Origin: Iphione sp. A-MEVVRFRX5
Taxonomy: Eukaryota
Assembly: GCA_976226885.1 (NCBI GenBank)
Contig: OZ320320.1
Coordinates: 61,876,001-61,940,000 of the forward strand
DNA length: 64,000 nt
Direction: 5' to 3'
Position numbers and translations under genes: made by a program. Numbering within the stretch: the first letter of the stretch is position 1; each line of letters starts with the position of its first letter. Below the pieces are notes generated by a model. That model was not told the origin of the DNA and did not search any database. It saw only the letters and a program-made list of their open reading frames with translations. Below are positions 1 to 20,911 of the stretch, in pieces.

Positions 1-1859
1 GCGATGTATCTGCGTGGATGGAGCAATCAGTTGAAAAGCAATCCGTGAATGGATCCCAGATAGTCAAAAGATGTCCAGGTTGGTAGACAATGTACAGGGT
101 ATACGTATCCAGAATACCCCGTAAATTTTGGATAGGGTTCCAGGATACACACATGTATATATGTACTTTTTGTACCTAAGGAAAGGCACCAGTGTTTAAT
201 GCACGTCCTGGATATGTATCCATGTGCATGAATACATATATGTAAAAAGCCACTTATTGTTATTTCCTTTCAATTTACTAACATATCTCATCACTTTTGT
301 ATGCAAAGATCTCCAGTGTGCTTATATGATATGATCGCTAAAGAAAGAGACAAAAATGTACAAAAGCTACCAGAACACCAGTACTCTAATAATTGGTAGC
401 TGAGCGAACGTGTCCTGGGAAGCTCCAAGCTGAGGTCTCCAGAATGTATGTGACCTCACTATTTGCATAACCTAGAAAGAGACTCGGTTGCCATTGTGAG
501 GAGAGACATTGGCGAGTGTGGTTCTGTTGCCATAAGAGAATCTCTCGGCTGTGTAGTTTGTAAGTGTGGAGATAAGGACAGTTTAGACTCTGAACGCTGA
601 CTCGATATAGTGAATAAGATGATCCAGGTATATGTGCACGCCCTTGAGTCTGGAAGCCTTACCTTTACTTCAGTTCGTTTTCTTCTTGCAGGCCTACCTC
701 CGCAGGCAGTCTCGGGTACACTGCCACTATATAGCGTGTGCTTTTGTTTTCAAACCTCCACATACATTGATGACGTGTACACACTTCTACATATATACGA
801 AATATATCCAAATCACGACTTACGTGAATGGTTTACTTATCTCCTTGTGTTATGTTGCGCCTGCTACGGCATGATACCCAAGCAGTGATCCCTGCGATCC
901 CCAGTGGGCCTGGGTCAGCATCTAGGACGCATCGACGTTACTGGGGTTGTTCGGAAATTTACCTTTACGCTGCTACGGCACCCGGGTTTCAGTGTAGATG
1001 GGTATGCATGTTGGCCGGTGGTTGACCACTGAAGACGCCTTTGATCAGTAGTTCTTCACTGACATGTTCACATGGATGTTCACATTGAATAAAAGGATCC
1101 AGTTGCATGCATGTACTTGACTGTAAATTGGACTGGGATTGGTAATGTCATTTTATTTCACGTATATGCCATGGTTGAAAGGGTTGCACGTTGTCCAATC
1201 ATATAGTCCTGACTGGTGGCACCACTAAAACATTTCTCAGCAACAGACCAATCGGTTGATAGCGTGAACTGGTATGTTCTAAAAGAATGTACCATGGGTT
1301 TTAGTAGGTCAAGGGATTCGAGAGAAGCCAATGTTCAATGTTCAGGCCTCCCAGTGATAGGTCAATTGTAATTGGGCAGCTGAACTTAGATCATTCTGGG
1401 CAACTTGTCATGAAGAAACCAGGTATTATTATACATCTGAGACGTGTTGTCAACCTAGCCAGATTATGTCATATTAACCATAGATGACACGGTAGGTCAA
1501 AGAAGTACGATGGCCCTGCTGTGCTGCAGACTTACTAGGTTACACATCCCTCTGAGACATGAATATATGCTGACTTTCTTGGTTATCTTACAGTGGGTTA
1601 AATCAATAAACACCACCTCCTGGATATGATCGGATACAATCGACTGTCCCAAATGCAAACATCTTACGTTTTTTCCCATACCGTGTGCATTTCAGATATG
1701 TCTGGTTTACAAATCCGTGAGTAACATGAAGGTGGGGAGGGGGGTCAAAACTGAAAAAAAATATCCTCTTGTCCCTCTCTTTCTACAAAGTAAATACATG
1801 TCTACCCACACCTTAGGCAATGAATAACCCTTCAAACACTCTCTTAGGTTGGCTTTCCA

Positions 1860-14930: not shown

Positions 14931-16409
14931 ATGACACGATCTAAGCCACATAAAGACAGCGATGACAAGAAAACTGAGACTGGAAACCTGAGGAGTGGCC
15001 GAGGAAAGGAGAATGGAGTGAACTTACAAGTTTTAGGCAGCTCTTCGACCGAATATGAAGACAAGAATGACGCGGGGGCAACTCAACCAAAGGGGCCTAC
15101 AGAGAACGTGCGGAGTACTGTATTAACGTCCACACGGACCGGGGTCGATACACACAGCAACGGTAGAGACTCTGAGGGAGACCGCACGGTCCCCATGCCC
15201 GGTGCAAATGAAGGAGACCTGAGGACTGCACTGTCTGCTATCCTCACGAATGAGCAAAGAGTACTCCATGAACTACAGGAGCTAAGGAAGCAAGGAAGCC
15301 AGAATAATGCGGATGACATGCAACAAGTTGAGCGGTTAGTGAAAACAAACGTTGAACTAGTTGAACTAATGAATAAGGTGCTGGAAAGGGTAGACGAACT
15401 AAAAAACAGAGTGGATGAATTGGAGCGGGGGCCAGTCACAATAGAAAAAGATGAGGCAGCGGAAAACAACAACCTGGAGGAAAATGTCTACGAGCGGAGA
15501 TGGAATCTGATTCTCAAGGGTATCCCTGAAAGCGAGGACACAGACCTACGGGAAACAGTGCTTGATCTATTATGGCACTTAGACCATAACACGACCGAAA
15601 AGGACATTTTCAGTGTTGAAAGAATTGGCAAGGCGAGACAGGGAGCTGAGAGAAATGTACTTCTCTCATTCAACTCGACCTTTGCACGAAATAAGATCTA
15701 CAGTAAAAGGTTCAAACTGAAATCCAACGAAGAATATTCCTCCATCTACATTAAGGAGGACATCCCTTGGGAGGCGATGACATTACACCGGGATCTACAT
15801 AAAATCGCAGGGGAAGCGAGGCGAAACGGCCTGAAAGCGAGCGTCAGGGGCATCACATTGGTGTTAGAAGGGATTAAATATGGGCACCGGGAACTTGACA
15901 ATCTGCCGTACAGCTTGAGCAGGGAGAGCGCAAACACTATTGAAGACGAGAATACAATAGCAGTGAAGGGCGAAAGCTGTAGACTGTCAAGCCTATACCC
16001 AAGACCAATAGAACTACAGGGTGAAAGCTTCAGGTCGGCAGAGCATGCGTTTCAATTCAAAAAAGCTATCGGTTGCAACGAGAACGAGACCGCCGCGCGA
16101 ATAAAATCAGTTGAGAGTTCATTCGAGGCGAGAAAGCTAGGGGAATCGGTCAATGCTACTGCAGGCTGGCGAAAGAAAGAATTAAGCGTATTGTTTGAAG
16201 TTCAAAAGGCAAAATTCGAACAGCACGAGGACCTGCAACACCTGCTGGAGGATACTGGATCAAAGGACATTGTTGAGGTATCTACGAACGAATTTCTAGG
16301 TAGCGGGAAGGGGGCACTCGATAACACTTTATTGAGGGGTACTTACAAGGGTGAAAACAAGATTGGCCGCGCTCTAGAAAATGTTAGGGACTACCTGTTT
16401 CCGTGTTAG
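14931..16409 (+). CDS. LINE C ORF1 (492 aa): coiled coil-RRM-CTD fused to a C-terminal NADAR/YbiA (DUF1768)-like domain
   Basis: Heptad region, RRWNLILKGIPESED RRM start, CTD-like VRGITLVLEGIKY; then LSSLYP, SAEHAFQFKKA, EARKLG, W, AKFEQH, LLEDTG, IVEVS, GENKIGRAL, in the order of NADAR motifs (recognised by eye). Confidence 0.88.
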   Translation: MTRSKPHKDSDDKKTETGNLRSGRGKENGVNLQVLGSSSTEYEDKNDAGATQPKGPTENVRSTVLTSTRTGVDTHSNGRDSEGDRTVPMPGANEGDLRTALSAILTNEQRVLHELQELRKQGSQNNADDMQQVERLVKTNVELVELMNKVLERVDELKNRVDELERGPVTIEKDEAAENNNLEENVYERRWNLILKGIPESEDTDLRETVLDLLWHLDHNTTEKDIFSVERIGKARQGAERNVLLSFNSTFARNKIYSKRFKLKSNEEYSSIYIKEDIPWEAMTLHRDLHKIAGEARRNGLKASVRGITLVLEGIKYGHRELDNLPYSLSRESANTIEDENTIAVKGESCRLSSLYPRPIELQGESFRSAEHAFQFKKAIGCNENETAARIKSVESSFEARKLGESVNATAGWRKKELSVLFEVQKAKFEQHEDLQHLLEDTGSKDIVEVSTNEFLGSGKGALDNTLLRGTYKGENKIGRALENVRDYLFPC

Positions 16410-16487: not shown

Positions 16488-17093
16488 ATGCGCCTACGAG
16501 TGAGATACGTGACGGACGAGAGGGGCATGTCGCTCGGCCAGGGAGTCGGGGATCGGATGACGCAGTCGTGTCGCTGGCTTACAATGGTAGAGGGTGGAAT
16601 CAGCCTGGAGGATCTAGTACGATGCACGGAGCAAGCACCATTGGACGAATATGATGTTACCTTGATCCATTTGGGCATGCATACGCTTGTCGAAGGGATC
16701 GGGCACTGTGAAATCGTCCGCCATCGTTCCAGACCTGAACTTGCGGAGAGCGTACTGGACATGATGATGACAGTCGGTGAGAGGTTGGTGACCCCGTACA
16801 TGCACGAGGTTGTGTTTCTTCCTATTTTTGGCAAGATTATTGGTTCTGGTTGCCCAGAATGTCAGGCTGAACTAAATGAACATGTTACCATATATAATGA
16901 AGCCTGCCATGCAGCGAATGCAAGGAACGGGCTTGGCACACCAAACACTTATTGGCCTGTCCATGAGTACAATGACGAGGAAGAAATCTTCAGAAATGAA
17001 CTGATTGTTGACAACATAAATGTCGTACCACATGTCGAATCAAATTGGATATCCGAAATAGAGGAATTCATCACGATTAACTTTCTCACTTGA
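16488..17093 (+). CDS. LINE C middle ORF (201 aa): degenerate SGNH/GDSL-hydrolase-like protein
   Basis: Block order RYVTDERGMSL / VEGGISLEDL / DVTLIHLGMHTL / IVDNINV resembles SGNH blocks I, II, III and V with catalytic residues replaced; intact frame inside the element. Confidence 0.6.
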   Translation: MRLRVRYVTDERGMSLGQGVGDRMTQSCRWLTMVEGGISLEDLVRCTEQAPLDEYDVTLIHLGMHTLVEGIGHCEIVRHRSRPELAESVLDMMMTVGERLVTPYMHEVVFLPIFGKIIGSGCPECQAELNEHVTIYNEACHAANARNGLGTPNTYWPVHEYNDEEEIFRNELIVDNINVVPHVESNWISEIEEFITINFLT

Positions 17094-17502
17094 ACATACT
17101 TTAGCCACTTTTCCGTTTCATTTTTTCAACTTCTAAAAAATCATGCAATAGTTGAATTATCATTATTCCTTTTCTCCAAACAGTGACATTTCCAGGGTGA
17201 GTTATCACTGTCACTAAATGAACACATAGACTTGCACATATTTCTTTCTATACCCAAAGACAGCTGTGATATTATACTACACTGCATAAGTTCTAACTAG
17301 AACTTAAGTATACCACTTGGTTGTTTGAATCATGAAAGGTAGATCTGTTATATTCTGTTACCACTGATCACTGTTACCACTGTTCCCGAGGAATACAGTG
17401 ACTTACACATTTTTCCTTTTAATGTCCAGCAACAGCTGCGATAGTTTGCTACACCACAAAAGGTCTAGTTGTCATTTATGTAAACCATTTATTGTTTGAA
17501 TC

Positions 17503-20282
17503 ATGAAGGGAGACCATTTATATTCTGGAACGCCCATAGTCTTTACCCGAAAGTCGAGGAACTGAAGGATATGTTATGTAAACATAGCCCACACGCACTA
17601 TGCATAGGGGAGACTTGGTTACGTGATTCAGTCCTAAACAGTCAACTGGCCCATGCGGGTTATACCATCTTCAGGCAGGATAGAGTGGGCCTTCAAAAAA
17701 GCAAAGGAGGGGGCCTACTAGCGTATATCTCAAACAAATCCCAGTGTACTGAAATAACTGAACTAAGCAAAGTAAGTGAAGATATTGAGGGACTCTGGCT
17801 TAAAATAGTGACACCGCACAGGAAAAAATTGAGCCTGGGTGTACTGTATGCGCCCCCAGGAGGGAATATAGATGCCATAGTCAAGTACTTAAATGAGTGT
17901 CTCCTAATCCTAAAAAAAGAGAAATCCAGTGATATACTGTTTGGGGGTGACATAAATGTTGACTGGTCCAAGGCAAACTTGCGTATGAGTAAACTACTAA
18001 AGTTAAGTCAAACTTTTAAGTTGCACCAGTATATTAGAGAACCTACCCTGATACACCGCAGTAGTAAATCTGTTCTTGATCTCATATTCAGTAACATGAG
18101 CCATATAACTGCAACAGGTGCTTTAAACGTACATGCCAGTGATCATGCTCCAGTTTTTGTGTTAAACAAGAAGATCAGGGAGCGTGATGCCTCAGAAACA
18201 AAGAAAATCCGTAGCTGGAGGAGGTACAACAGAGTAGCGCTTGAGCAGGAACTAGCAGGCACACTAAGAGAGGTAGAAAATGGCGAGGGTACACTAGCGG
18301 AGGAAAAATGGAACTGCTTGCAGCACGGAATAGAGAAAGCGACTGAAGTGTTGTGCCCGTTTAGAGACTGTCGTGTCAGGCCAGACAGGGGTTGGGTCAC
18401 ACCAGAAATTAATGAGTCGAGGCTAAACAGGGACTTTTTCCTTGACGATTTTAGGGAGACAGGTAATATTGACAGTCTAAGGATTTCTAAATTTTACAAA
18501 TCAAAAGTCCAGAAACTAGTGTTCACAGCAAAAAAGAGACACCTAACACAGGCGCTGAGAGAGTGCAATTCTCCCAATGAATACTGGAAGTGCATAAACG
18601 ATCAGGTACTGTGTAGGAAGGAGAAGCATTCTAATATCGTACTGAAAGGAGGACAAAGCGTAGCAGACGTAGACAATGTACCGAGAGTCCTAAACCAGTA
18701 CTTCATCTCCCAGGCGGAGAGTTTATCAGGATCAATATCGGTTAAAGAAATGGAGTGGGACCCCAGCTGGGACCTAAAACCAGTAACACATAAGACCTTA
18801 TGTAAAGCGATCCAGTCATTAAAAACAACAAAACCTAGTGGAATGGAAGGGATACCGACAGTAGTATTGAAGGACTCATTACTCGTTGCGTCAGAACAGC
18901 TGCTGGGAATAATAAATTCAATGATACTCACAGGGACTTTTCCGACGCAGTGGAAAGTAGCACGCATAACGCCACTACACAAGAAGGGCTCAAAGACTGA
19001 AAAATCCAACTATAGGCCAGTTTCCATACTACCTATGATTGGAAAACTGGTTGAAAAGTTGGTACATTCGCAGCTGAGAGACTATCTAGAAAGCAGTGGG
19101 TACTTCTGTCAGCAGCAACATGGGTTTAGGCAAGAGCGGGGAACTGCAACTGCATTAGCTGTATTTCTGCGAGACTTGTACAGTGCAGTTGACCAGGGAA
19201 AGTATATATCCAGTATCTGTTTTGACCTGACTAAAGCATTTGATGTAATCGATCATTCACTAATCATTGCAAGCTTAAAACGAGCGGGTACTGGGGAAAG
19301 GATGATAGCATGGGCAAAGTCATACCTAGCAGACCGATATCAATTTGTCAAATGCAATGGATACTGCTCTGGCCAGTTACCAGTCCGACAAGGGGTACCA
19401 CAAGGGAGCCTAATGGGCCCGTTGATGTTTACGTTGATCATAAATGCACTTCCAGGCTCACTAGCAATAACAAAATCCATACTTTACGCTGACGATCTGA
19501 CAATCTACTGCGAGGCGAGCAACGCCATGGCTCTACACTTGAAATTGCAGCGTGGCATACGTGACGTTGTGAACTGGACAACAGCGAACGGACTGACATT
19601 AAATGCGAAAAAGACTGTATGTATCTCCTTTGGAAAAGCAAGGGGACTTGATCTCGACCTATCTTTGTTTGACCAGAGGATAACTATGGTTAATCAATGC
19701 ACTTTTCTGGGTTACACCCTAGATGACAGGTTGGGGTGGAAGCCTATGGTGAATATTATGGTAAAGAAATTAAGAGCTAGATCGCATGCACTATCAAAGG
19801 TAATAAAACTGGTGCCGTTTAAGGACCGAGTAGTGATGCTGAAAGCATTTGTAGTGCCAGTGCTAGACTACGGTTTACCCTTTGTAGTAACTACATCGAA
19901 GTCGCTAATAGACAACCTGCAGATCGAGCTAAATCGCGCAATCAAATTAGTGTTATTGGGAAGTCTAAGGGCTGAGCGGTCGGCAACATCACTACGAAGA
20001 GTGGTGGACTTGCCAACAGTAAATCAAAGGGGTAGGCATCAGTTGGTATGTCTTATTCACCGTGTGCATCTACTGAACGAGTGTGTGGTGCTGGAGTGAC
20101 CACGTAGATCACGAAGAAGTGGTATTGCTCAACTCAGCGTAAAACGCCCAAGACTCTCCTTGTATGCAAAATCTTTCTGGAATCAGGGACTATTAGCCTG
20201 GAACAGTTTACCGTTCCCACCAAAAAGTAGACTAGATGTGAGTACTTTCAAGAAGTTGCTGAGCAATGTAGAATCTGTGTAG
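17503..20282 (+). pseudogene. LINE C ORF2: APE endonuclease plus reverse transcriptase, with a probable 1-nt deletion after the ATG and a premature TGA at 20097-20099
   Basis: APE motifs WNAHSL, CIGETWL, GGGL, LYAPP, GGDINVD, LDLIF, SDHAP; RT motifs NYRPVSIL, QHGFR, FDLTKAFD, GVPQGS, YADD; the frame resumes after the TGA with SFWNQGLLAWNSLP...FKKLL to TAG 20280-20282. Confidence 0.92.
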
Positions 20283-20802
20283 GAGTAGTCCACGATGCAG
20301 CTGTTTTGATCCGTTAGATGTGAAAACATGTAACTATGTACGATAGCTTTGTCATTGAAACGATCTTAAGGTATTAAGATGCTTGTAATATAGGGATATC
20401 TGCATGAGAGGGTTGATACTGTGATGTATTTTTTAAATGTATAATGTGTCACTATTATCCAACTGCATGTACCAAGTCGAATATGACTGCATATCTGGTG
20501 TTAACATTTCTCGTTACTTGTGTGTTCATACCAAATTAGCACCAACTTGTAAACTGTTTTTGTTATCTTTTATGTTTAATCACTATACACCACGCATGCT
20601 TGTTATTATACACTATTTCTAGTTTGTTATTATTACAGTGACTGAAAACGAGAGGTTGACCGTATCAAGTAAAATCAATTTTCTTTTCTCCTACTAGTAT
20701 TATTCATTTACCTTTAAAATGTCTTTATGTTTATTCTCTCTTACTCTTGCCTGTTCACTGGAAGGACCTCCGTGTATATCACCTGATCTACCTTGAGAAG
20801 TG

Positions 20803-20834
20803 AATAAAGCAATTTGAATCTTGAATCTTGAATC
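20803..20834 (+). repeat. 3' tail of LINE C: AATAAA plus (TTGAATC)3
   Basis: gaataaagcaatttgaatcttgaatcttgaatc. Confidence 0.92.
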
Positions 20835-20911
20835 TTTGCTCAACAAAATAAGTTATGTAAGTATTTGACCCTCGCAGAAGCCCATTTCAAGAGGGGGAGT
20901 CAGGGGGTACC

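Follow-up and report, generated by a model that had tools for sequence, protein, structure and literature searches.

The first open reading frame (ORF1) of a LINE retrotransposon from Iphione sp. ends in a genuine and complete NADAR domain of the YbiA family. Coordinates are given throughout as positions within the window, the 64,000-nt stretch of DNA that was analysed, on its forward strand (+), and are collected in Table 1. The listing of open reading frames returned exactly the limits previously described for an intact ORF1, a frame of 492 codons plus stop that begins with an ATG. The chance of 492 sense codons in an open frame is approximately (61/64)^492, or ~1e-10 per start, placing ORF1 far past random expectation. 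All eight of the NADAR motifs that the preliminary description quoted are found in the translation, in the order in which they were quoted, and the coiled coil-RRM-CTD arrangement that it assigned to the preceding part of the protein is backed by structure prediction, with a long helix as the presumed coiled coil, and by a fold match of the RRM and CTD to human L1 ORF1p. The presence of an extra C-terminal domain likewise holds, although its start, placed at ~15960, has been moved to near aa 342 (window ~15954).

Table 1. Features of the NADAR-bearing LINE within the 64,000-nt window
Feature	Position (ORF1 residues)	Strand	Basis
ORF1, L1-type ORF1 protein and NADAR fusion	14931..16409	+	ORF listing; NADAR profiles; structure and fold matches
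N-terminus, basic, Ser-rich, predicted disordered	14931..15209 (aa 1-93)	+	pLDDT < 50
Single long helix, presumed coiled coil	15210..15428 (aa 94-166)	+	pLDDT about 80-90
RRM, L1 ORF1p type	15504..15725 (aa 192-265)	+	Foldseek
CTD, L1 ORF1p type	15747..15950 (aa 273-340)	+	Foldseek
NADAR (YbiA-family) domain	15954..16397 (aa 342-489)	+	PF08719, TIGR02464, phmmer to 2B3W and 8BAU, Foldseek
E371 codon, equivalent of E43 (P. nicotianae NADAR) and E88 (E. coli C7 NADAR)	16041..16043	+	Alignment; roles PMC11543638
K378 codon, equivalent of K50 (P. nicotianae) and K95 (E. coli C7), 7 residues past the Glu	16062..16064	+	Alignment
E449 codon, last beta-strand (IVE), equivalent of E125 (P. nicotianae NADAR)	16275..16277	+	Alignment
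Middle ORF, 201 codons, SGNH/GDSL-like pseudo-esterase (predicted)	16488..17093	+	ORF listing; language-model features
ORF2, open over 867 codons and lacking an ATG; APE endonuclease and reverse transcriptase	17496..20099	+	Exo_endo_phos_2, RVT_1
ORF2 last 60 codons, in frame past the TGA, with conserved C-terminal motif	20100..20282	+	Comparison with L031
Conserved 3' end	20741..20836	+	83% identity to L031 3' end

Identification of the domain was obtained from both profiles and structure. The Pfam profile PF08719 aligns to aa 354-489 of ORF1 over profile positions 15-162 of 163 (E 4.6e-23; 82.7 bits, gathering score 35.1), and the best NCBIfam match is TIGR02464 at 91.9 bits (cut-off 73.7). 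The AF2 model (pLDDT 97.1, pTM 0.88) shows the NADAR domain packed rigidly on the CTD, and Foldseek recovered both the NADAR of Phytophthora nicotianae (8BAU; E 1.4e-9, TM by target 0.70) and E. coli YbiA (2B3W; E 3e-8, TM by target 0.69). The NADAR/YbiA match proposed earlier as a check is therefore found above curated Pfam and NCBIfam cut-offs, with AF2 and Foldseek in agreement. With YbiA and the stand-alone eukaryotic NADAR of P. nicotianae the domain shares its fold, the Glu/Lys/Glu residues and a naked YbiA core lacking fold extensions. It differs from them in forming the C-terminal domain of a 492-aa RNA-binding-type protein and in a loop past the last strand that is one residue shorter.

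Upstream of the NADAR domain, ORF1 follows the order of human LINE-1 ORF1p (type II; 2YKP, 2W7A, 2LDY), with a long helix, an RRM and a CTD. The N-terminal 93 residues are the least conserved among paralogues (24% mean identity). A crude heptad check of the 73-residue helix that follows gave a hydrophobic fraction of 0.61 at a/d positions, against 0.35 overall. The RRM was matched by Foldseek to the central domain of human L1 ORF1p (2W7A; E 1e-3, TM by target 0.69) and the RRM and CTD together to 2YKP, 2YKO and 2LDY over 140-157 columns, with E-values from 6e-7 (2YKP/2YKO) to 6e-6. Among paralogues the CTD is the best conserved segment of ORF1, at 52% identity. The Pfam family Transposase_22 gave no match in ORF1 at E up to 1, and the predicted likeness to L1-type ORF1 proteins is at the level of fold only. 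Unlike the human protein, ORF1 of this element adds a domain of enzymatic type after the CTD, and the accompanying ORF2 is not L1-like.

The fusion resides in a three-ORF LINE of the APE type, consisting of ORF1-NADAR, a pseudo-SGNH ORF and an APE-RT ORF2. An origin as a host gene exon was rejected, given that the middle ORF, ORF2 and 3' tail of the LINE itself lie downstream of ORF1. ORF2 matches Exo_endo_phos_2 (E 2e-9) and RVT_1 (E 2e-35), and its open frame stops at an in-frame TGA (20097-20099); the nearest relative, L031, has an intact ORF2 of 975 aa. Because its ORF2 lacks an ATG and contains this in-frame TGA, the window copy is probably not autonomous. At the 3' end an AATAAA (20803-20808) precedes a tail of three TTGAATC repeats (20814-20834), where L031 carries three TGAATAC repeats, and short matches of 86-88% elsewhere end at window positions 20834-20838. 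The window subfamily is represented by one full-length copy at the DNA level. With the 5' boundary of the element left undefined, a search for target-site duplications returned only 8-base, chance-level matches.

Several LINE families of the oyster Crassostrea gigas, filed in Repbase as Tx1, appear to encode ORF1 proteins that carry a YbiA-family NADAR (PMC12477816, Genome Biol 2025). The preliminary description had left open whether the fusion was already described; it is in print, in a few sentences, for these oyster elements. That account does not go into selection, catalytic residues, copy number or structure, and what is new here relative to the published record is the selection, the structure, the catalytic conservation and the three-ORF layout. 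Both sets of elements bear a YbiA-family NADAR on a LINE ORF1 in a lophotrochozoan-type host. Elements of the Tx1 clade, within the L1 group, have an ORF2 of ~1200-1300 aa with a C-terminal CCHC motif. In contrast to the oyster elements, compared here by their description only, the present element has an APE-RT ORF2 of ~975 aa that lacks a C-terminal CCHC, a 3' tail of short tandem repeats and a pseudo-SGNH module in an ORF of its own, a combination that fits CR1/L2-like elements. No Tx1-type ORF2 was found; that of the relative is 975 aa long and has no CCHC. The 3' tail consists of tandem 7-base repeats. Against L1 ORF2p in the PDB, only the RT core of ORF2 aligned (E 1e-10), no better than R2. 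Overall, the element looks CR1/L2-like.

Capture of NADAR domains by other replicators is also on record. In Ectocarpus, Gypsy LTR retrotransposons carry a NADAR at the N-terminus of Pol (PMC12477816). This is again a YbiA-family NADAR borne by a retrotransposon, but of the LTR class, in another host kingdom and with Pol rather than an RNA-coating protein as its fusion partner, and it was probably captured independently. [quoted passage not shown] The Macro/NADAR polyproteins of animal positive-strand RNA viruses, the phage NADAR gp30.3 acting against DarT1 and the LINE described here are alike in being selfish replicators with an ADP-ribose-mark eraser of their own, putative in the case of the LINE. 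For the viral and phage systems a host writer has been demonstrated or strongly argued. In contrast, we know of no host ADP-ribose writer for LINEs.

The fusion is widespread. Within the same genome, 3707 first-look ORF1-NADAR candidates were found on many contigs; all 150 of those scored reached E < 1e-20, and most of these 150 are open frames of 450-600 aa (about 500). Beyond this genome, an exhaustive HMMER search turned up 4834 representative clusters with E-values no higher than 1e-3, and most of the best 150 of these span RRM, CTD and NADAR in one stretch. In two other assemblies, ORF1-NADAR proteins lie upstream of colinear APE and RT ORF2s of 964-1042 aa. The association was also reached by the reverse route, as a search begun from ORF2 alone led back to a NADAR-bearing ORF1. 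The fusion is ancient, and is common to many diverged lineages within this genome and to elements of other assemblies.

Constraint on the domain was assessed against L031, which is 74% identical in nucleotides over ORF1. Amino acid identity to this relative is 90% for NADAR, 83% for the CTD, 76% for the RRM, 73% for ORF2 and 71% for the middle ORF, and the NADAR dN of 0.073 is the lowest in the whole element, dS being saturated in this comparison. Across 15 intact paralogues, NADAR and RRM are 42% and 44% identical, respectively. These comparisons show that purifying selection on NADAR is at least as strong as that on the RNA-binding domains. The preliminary description had named three outcomes that would speak against its reading, namely the lack of a profile or structural match, occurrence in this copy only and neutral evolution. 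All three fail, because a profile and fold match was obtained, the fusion is shared by the candidates of this genome and has the same layout in other assemblies, and the low dN and high identity of the domain rule out neutral evolution. NADAR could be a passenger, acquired by accident as a piece of a host or bacterial gene and of no use to the element, which would agree with the single-copy state of the window subfamily at the DNA level. This reading is nevertheless extremely improbable, given the intact frames in most of the scored diverged copies (150 of the 3707 candidates were scored), the identical architecture in other assemblies and a dN lower than anywhere else in the element. Chance insertion or neutral passage was rejected as an explanation on the thousands of related copies, the constraint on NADAR and the catalytic residues kept in 63/70 copies.

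The residues to which NADAR catalysis has been assigned (PMC11543638, PMC11125620) correspond to E371, K378 and E449 of ORF1. A Glu in the last strand is the signature of the YbiA family, the equivalent residue being Asp in the BC4488 family and His in phage NADARs (PMC11543638, PMC11125620). At the E371 position, Glu is present in 69/70 copies sampled from the same genome and in 76/76 foreign ORF1-NADAR proteins. The K378 position is Lys in 69/70 of the former, while the foreign proteins have Lys in 51/76 and Arg in 17/76 (basic in 68/76). At the E449 position, Glu is found in 65/70 and Asp in 3/70 of the copies from this genome, and Glu in 76/76 foreign proteins. The full E-K-E set is carried by 63 of the 70 sampled copies and E-K-D by a further three (3/70). 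As judged from these alignments, no position of the NADAR domain is better conserved than the three putative catalytic residues.

The residues that contact ADP-ribose in 8BAU (K75, G78, R79, Y84, D86, W89, R93, D130 and W133) are kept less uniformly. Within the own-genome family G78 and W89 are retained and K75 is replaced by Arg, with R79 changed to Asp, Asn, Ser or Glu, Y84 falling in a gap, R93 changed to Glu and W133 to Leu or Tyr; the foreign ORF1-NADARs retain the Trp equivalent to W133. Because several ADP-ribose contacts are not kept, the substrate may differ from that of the P. nicotianae NADAR. The drift in some of these residues would also suit a domain that acts mainly as a reader, which binds ADP-ribose or poly(ADP-ribose) and steers the RNP towards ADP-ribosylated chromatin or DNA breaks while having little or no catalytic role, as in the 'sense' option of the preliminary description. 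However, a pure binding module would not need the catalytic residues that are retained in 63/70 copies and in essentially all foreign homologues, and this role is considered very unlikely.

The prevailing view of LINE ORF1 proteins is that they coat RNA and act as its chaperones. YbiA is known to act also on riboflavin intermediates. NADARs, including eukaryotic and animal members, de-ADP-ribosylate guanine, in both DNA and RNA, as well as cytidine (PMC11543638, PMC11833690, PMC12945103), and every NADAR so far tested, YbiA included, is active on base-linked ADP-ribose (PMC11125620). From its conserved residues and its fusion partner, we give about an even chance to the reading that the ORF1p-tethered NADAR is an N-glycosidase removing base-linked ADP-ribose at the LINE RNP. 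By coating the element RNA in cis, ORF1p would hold many NADAR active sites on the RNP, and these would most likely free guanine or cytosine bases of ADP-ribose. Candidate substrates are the LINE RNA, the nascent cDNA and single-stranded target DNA laid bare in target-primed reverse transcription. With adducts removed, the RT could still read template and primer, and base ADP-ribosylation by the host or by a toxin would be undone, while the tether to an RNA-binding protein would supply a nucleic-acid affinity that is absent from the bare YbiA fold.

The substrate might instead be a small NAD-derived molecule, either an ADP-ribose-derived immune signal or by-product or a reactive ribosylated metabolite, as for YbiA in riboflavin synthesis, such that NADAR blunts a host NADase/TIR-type response or detoxifies the vicinity of the RNP. 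The best NCBIfam match, TIGR02464, is a riboflavin-intermediate N-glycosidase family matched above its cut-off, many viral NADARs have been argued to target soluble ADP-ribose derivatives (PMC9503650), and several adenine and pyrophosphate contacts of the ADP-ribose-bound structure are altered here. Fusion to an RNA-coating protein and rigid packing on the CTD (pTM 0.88) better suit a polymer-bound substrate, though, and the activity of all tested NADARs, YbiA among them, on base-linked ADP-ribose (PMC11125620) also makes a substrate other than nucleic-acid adducts unlikely. The domain could also serve the processing of LINE transcript ends or caps, for example by clearing an ADP-ribose-derived group left by RNA repair or capping, in place of counter-defence. 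RNA-processing roles have been suggested (PMC12477816, PMC9503650), and the fold search returned NADARs joined to mRNA guanine-N7 methyltransferase/capping enzymes of giant viruses, and others that lie within RdRP polyproteins. Given that NADARs are inactive on 5'- and 3'-phosphate-linked RNA ADP-ribosylation (PMC11833690) and that the element encodes no RNA-repair partner (KptA, 2H or ligase), this role is judged decidedly unlikely.

The tie to PARP1, PARP2 and PARP13 drawn in the preliminary description fits poorly with known NADAR specificity, so that a base-directed transferase, such as one of the pierisin/CARP-1 type, makes a likelier host writer than a PARP. A PF03496 profile search for a pierisin-type transferase in the host gave no match, and the control genomes were silent as well. 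We put forward only tentatively that annelid, mollusc and possibly other invertebrate LINEs carry NADAR as a counter-defence enzyme against host ADP-ribosylation of guanine or cytosine in LINE RNA or RT intermediates, for instance by pierisin/CARP-1-like writers. Were this so, a nucleic-acid ADP-ribosylation pathway would restrict animal transposons, mirroring DarT/NADAR and phage anti-DarT systems. A putative base-ADP-ribose eraser that is the best-conserved part of a LINE, with conserved catalytic residues and thousands of candidate copies, would imply that, in these animals, nucleic-acid ADP-ribose chemistry is of importance to retrotransposition. The fusion also makes it testable whether animals ADP-ribosylate transposon RNA or DNA as a means of restriction, and supplies a naturally occurring animal NADAR joined to its own nucleic-acid-binding partner.

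To our knowledge, the sole accessory enzyme module so far described in LINE ORF1 proteins is the esterase of vertebrate CR1/L2 elements. Esterase ORF1s were found in vertebrate groups only (PMC4120745). The type IV esterase ORF1s of vertebrate CR1/L2 LINEs such as ZfL2-1 (PMC3905857, PMC4120745) resemble the present element in placing an accessory hydrolase-fold module beside an RNA-binding function, and an SGNH-like module is present here too. They differ in that the SGNH-like module of this invertebrate element is a separate ORF, without the nucleophile Ser in most lineages, and in that the enzymatically equipped module is NADAR. The middle ORF has no Pfam match; its language-model features place it nearest to Lipase_GDSL_2 clusters, at 0.96, and the SGNH likeness is taken from these features only. 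In most of 26 middle-ORF paralogues block I reads xDE, xDV or xDW and not GDS, and block V shows no conserved His. Since another residue mostly stands in place of the nucleophile Ser, the middle ORF is predicted to be a pseudo-esterase. That ORF1 and the middle ORF are joined by read-through was also considered and rejected, for although the frame is shared, three stops lie between them. A middle-ORF homologue was detected at a single foreign locus, L082 (E 7e-11), with none at L032, L036 and L083, and therefore the three-ORF layout is common, not universal. Each of the 29 other loci retrieved, and the close relative L031, has a homologue immediately 3' of ORF1-NADAR. The pseudo-SGNH ORF is co-inherited with ORF1-NADAR.

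The C-terminal part of ORF1 (aa 354–489) matched the Pfam NADAR family PF08719 across positions 15–162 of the 163-position profile (E 4.6e-23, 82.7 bits, gathering score 35.1), and ORF1 also matched TIGR02464, the NCBIfam riboflavin-intermediate N-glycosidase domain, at 91.9 bits (cut-off 73.7). A phmmer search of PDB sequences returned YbiA of E. coli (2B3W, E 1.5e-6) and the NADAR of Phytophthora nicotianae (8BAU). The preliminary description had placed the ends of this ORF exactly, and every motif it quoted is present in the translation. An AlphaFold model of aa 180–492, computed from a 92-sequence alignment, reached a mean pLDDT of 97.1 and a pTM of 0.88, the latter suggesting that the modelled domains hold fixed positions relative to each other. 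Foldseek comparison of the C-terminal part with the PDB again returned the ADP-ribose-containing NADAR structure 8BAU (E 1.4e-9, TM by target 0.70) as well as 2B3W (E 3e-8, TM 0.69). The region N-terminal to NADAR matched chains of the human LINE-1 ORF1p trimer, 2YKP and 2YKO (E 6e-7), with further matches to the RRM-CTD NMR structure 2LDY and the RRM structure 2W7A. Pfam Transposase_22 had no match in ORF1. At the level of predicted fold, the layout originally proposed from the sequence, an RRM and CTD with an extra domain behind a presumed coiled coil, nevertheless holds.

Features of the element, with amino-acid identity and dN relative to L031, the nearest relative in the genome, on the same contig
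Feature	Position	Strand	Identity	dN	Description
ORF1	14931..16409	+			ATG start, 492 aa (ORF listing)
N-terminal region	aa 1-93		61% (with helix)	0.309 (with helix)	disordered in full-length model
Long helix	aa 94-166		61% (with N-terminus)	0.309 (with N-terminus)	unbroken in full-length model; crude heptad bias in support
RRM	aa ~192-265		76%	0.119	full-length model
CTD	aa ~273-340		83%	0.094	full-length model
NADAR	aa 342-489		90%	0.073	full-length model
Middle ORF	16488-17093	+	71%	0.182	201 codons, 3' of ORF1
ORF2 frame	17496-20282	+	73%	0.174	867-codon open frame (APE endonuclease, reverse transcriptase), then TGA and last 60 codons
Isolated 3'-end match	G000:C1:105143949-105144089				this genome
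Isolated 3'-end match	C17:79177530-79177620				this genome
Isolated 3'-end match	C1:160939995-160940081				this genome
Isolated 3'-end match	C15:52184944-52185029				this genome

Key residues of NADAR enzymes include a Glu, which is E43 of the P. nicotianae protein and E88 of that from E. coli C7, and, seven residues on, a Lys (K50 and K95, respectively) (PMC11543638, PMC11125620). The key catalytic residues align with E371, K378 and E449 of ORF1. This E-K-E set was retained in 63 of the 70 copies sampled from this genome, with E-K-D in three others and one change in the remaining four. Among 76 ORF1-NADAR proteins of other assemblies, the first and second Glu were each present in all 76, a basic residue was kept in 68 (51 Lys and 17 Arg), and the Trp equivalent to W89 was found in 74. 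By fold and alignment, ORF1 is an RNA-binding-type ORF1p whose NADAR is conserved and catalytically equipped. That the domain acts as a reader is highly improbable. In this genome's ORF1-NADAR family the equivalents of R79, Y84, R93 and W133, which make pyrophosphate and adenine contacts, are changed and the loop past the last strand is one residue shorter, and because of these differences the substrate could differ from plain ADP-ribosyl-guanine. Degradation of small-molecule ADPr derivatives is regarded as rather unlikely.

Synonymous sites were saturated between the window element and L031, its nearest relative in the genome (DNA identity 72–73%, ~74% over aligned ORF1 codons). NADAR was the best-conserved segment of the whole element in this comparison. 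It also had the lowest dN, contrary to the neutral evolution that the preliminary description had set against its own reading, and the chance that the domain is a neutral passenger is very slight. Across 15 intact paralogues, which align over their full length and have a common architecture, mean pairwise identity was 52% for the CTD, 44% for the RRM, 42% for NADAR, 30% for the helix and 24% for the N-terminus.

When the 1.18-Gb genome was searched in six frames for the NADAR part, 3707 first-look candidates emerged. The 150 of these that were scored all had E < 1e-20, with 32–47% identity plus one at 90%, and most were stop-free within open frames of 450–600 aa. Beyond this genome, 1.84 billion cluster representatives were searched exhaustively with HMMER, which gave 4834 matches at E <= 1e-3, 1250 of them at E <= 1e-10; the best 150 mostly carried RRM, CTD and NADAR as one continuous stretch at 23–33% identity. 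A word-indexed protein search with ORF1, by contrast, came back empty, and for TE proteins rich in low-complexity sequence such an empty result is no sign of absence. Atlas clusters of the ORF1-NADAR type carried the label Eukaryota, with Annelida the commonest group. In two other public assemblies, ORF1-NADAR proteins lie directly 5' of ORF2s with APE and RT, and two foreign ORF2s were colinear with that of L031 (26–29% identity, E 1e-104 to 1e-129). A search from ORF2 alone gave a best match that likewise has a NADAR ORF, of 707 aa, upstream. One 438-aa ORF1-NADAR protein was identical on five contigs, which suggests recent activity of its family. On this sequence evidence the fusion is no private accident of the window copy. 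Among the hits was also P0123, a protein of 1075 aa on a 13 kb ENA contig in which five NADAR domains follow one another in tandem (Pfam 442 bits); it is presumably the product of a multi-NADAR host gene such as has been reported for C. elegans SNA-3.

L031 has the same three-ORF set as the window element, with ORFs of 405, 213 and 975 aa. ORF1 and the middle ORF of the window copy are intact and share a frame, with three stops between them. ORF2 lacks an ATG, its frame opening at a TTG after a stop, and contains a single in-frame TGA at 20097–20099, past which the conserved C-terminal 60 codons, as compared with L031, go on in frame to 20282; the copy is therefore probably non-autonomous. ORF2 terminates in a '...WN.LP...' type motif, as seen in L2-like elements. 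No C-terminal CCHC was found in ORF2, its similarity to L1 ORF2p in the PDB was confined to the RT core (E 1e-10) and was not above that to R2, and PHD fingers, which are typical of CR1/L2 ORF1s (PMC4120745), occur in some of its closer RT relatives. From these four features we infer that the element is probably CR1/L2-like (Jockey superfamily) rather than L1/Tx1. The 3' end consists of ~90 conserved bases with AATAAA and three TTGAATC repeats, and L031 has three TGAATAC repeats. The last 90–140 bases (window 20741–20836) also occurred at isolated sites with 86–88% identity and a common 3' stop; these may be strongly 5'-truncated copies or a non-autonomous partner with a shared 3' end.

Homologues of the middle ORF (~200 aa, 27–72% identity) lie immediately 3' of ORF1-NADAR in all 29 other fetched loci of the genome and in L031. 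One was present in a single foreign locus (L082:7439-8083) and absent from the three others examined. The middle ORF had no match in Pfam and lay nearest to GDSL-lipase clusters by language-model features (SGNH/GDSL-like). Neither the nucleophile Ser of block I nor the His of block V is conserved in it, both being mostly replaced among homologues, and it appears to be a pseudo-esterase that is itself conserved. An annelid atlas cluster (~480 aa) combines NADAR and GDSL-lipase in one protein, with a CCHC zinc knuckle in one fifth of members; NADAR and esterase modules therefore co-travel in several arrangements, including another ORF1 type.

Full-text literature searches gave one relevant statement on retrotransposon NADAR, in a 2025 paper that describes the domain in Pol of Ectocarpus Gypsy elements and reports that ORF1 proteins of several Tx1 LINE families of Crassostrea gigas appear to carry it (PMC12477816). 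A large survey of Jockey-superfamily ORF1s leaves NADAR unmentioned and places esterase ORF1s in vertebrates only (PMC4120745). The fusion as such is thus already known, if barely. Within the literature searched, nothing was found in print on how widespread the fusion is or how selection acts on it, nor on the conserved catalytic triad, the fold-level proof, the association with a putatively CR1/L2-like ORF2, or the set of three ORFs that includes a pseudo-SGNH gene. Although the idea itself is published, a strongly conserved enzyme of apparent ADP-ribose-eraser type on a LINE coat protein is notable to specialists and directly testable.

NADARs of bacteria, of an oomycete and of a sponge cleave ADP-ribose off guanine, in ssDNA as well as RNA, and off cytidine. 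No other hydrolase family is known to do so on RNA guanosine, and a NADAR that itself binds nucleic acid works more efficiently (PMC11543638, PMC11833690, PMC12945103). By coating LINE RNA, ORF1p would concentrate NADAR on the RNP. There the domain could strip base-linked ADP-ribose, lesions that would block RT, off the RNA template, the cDNA or target ssDNA that lies exposed. The preliminary description was right about the fusion, but its link to PARPs is weak; transferases of the pierisin and CARP-1 type, the guanine-specific DNA ADP-ribosyltransferases of butterflies and shellfish (cited in PMC11543638), would match NADAR specificity better than PARPs as candidate writers. RNA-end or cap-related processing is quite unlikely as the function of the domain, even with the giant-virus atlas clusters that join a NADAR fold to mRNA guanine-N7 methyltransferase or capping enzymes. 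In other atlas clusters the fusion partner of the NADAR fold is an RdRP polyprotein of picorna-like viruses, and the capping-enzyme and RdRP fusions together hint that NADAR is linked to RNA guanine or cap chemistry.
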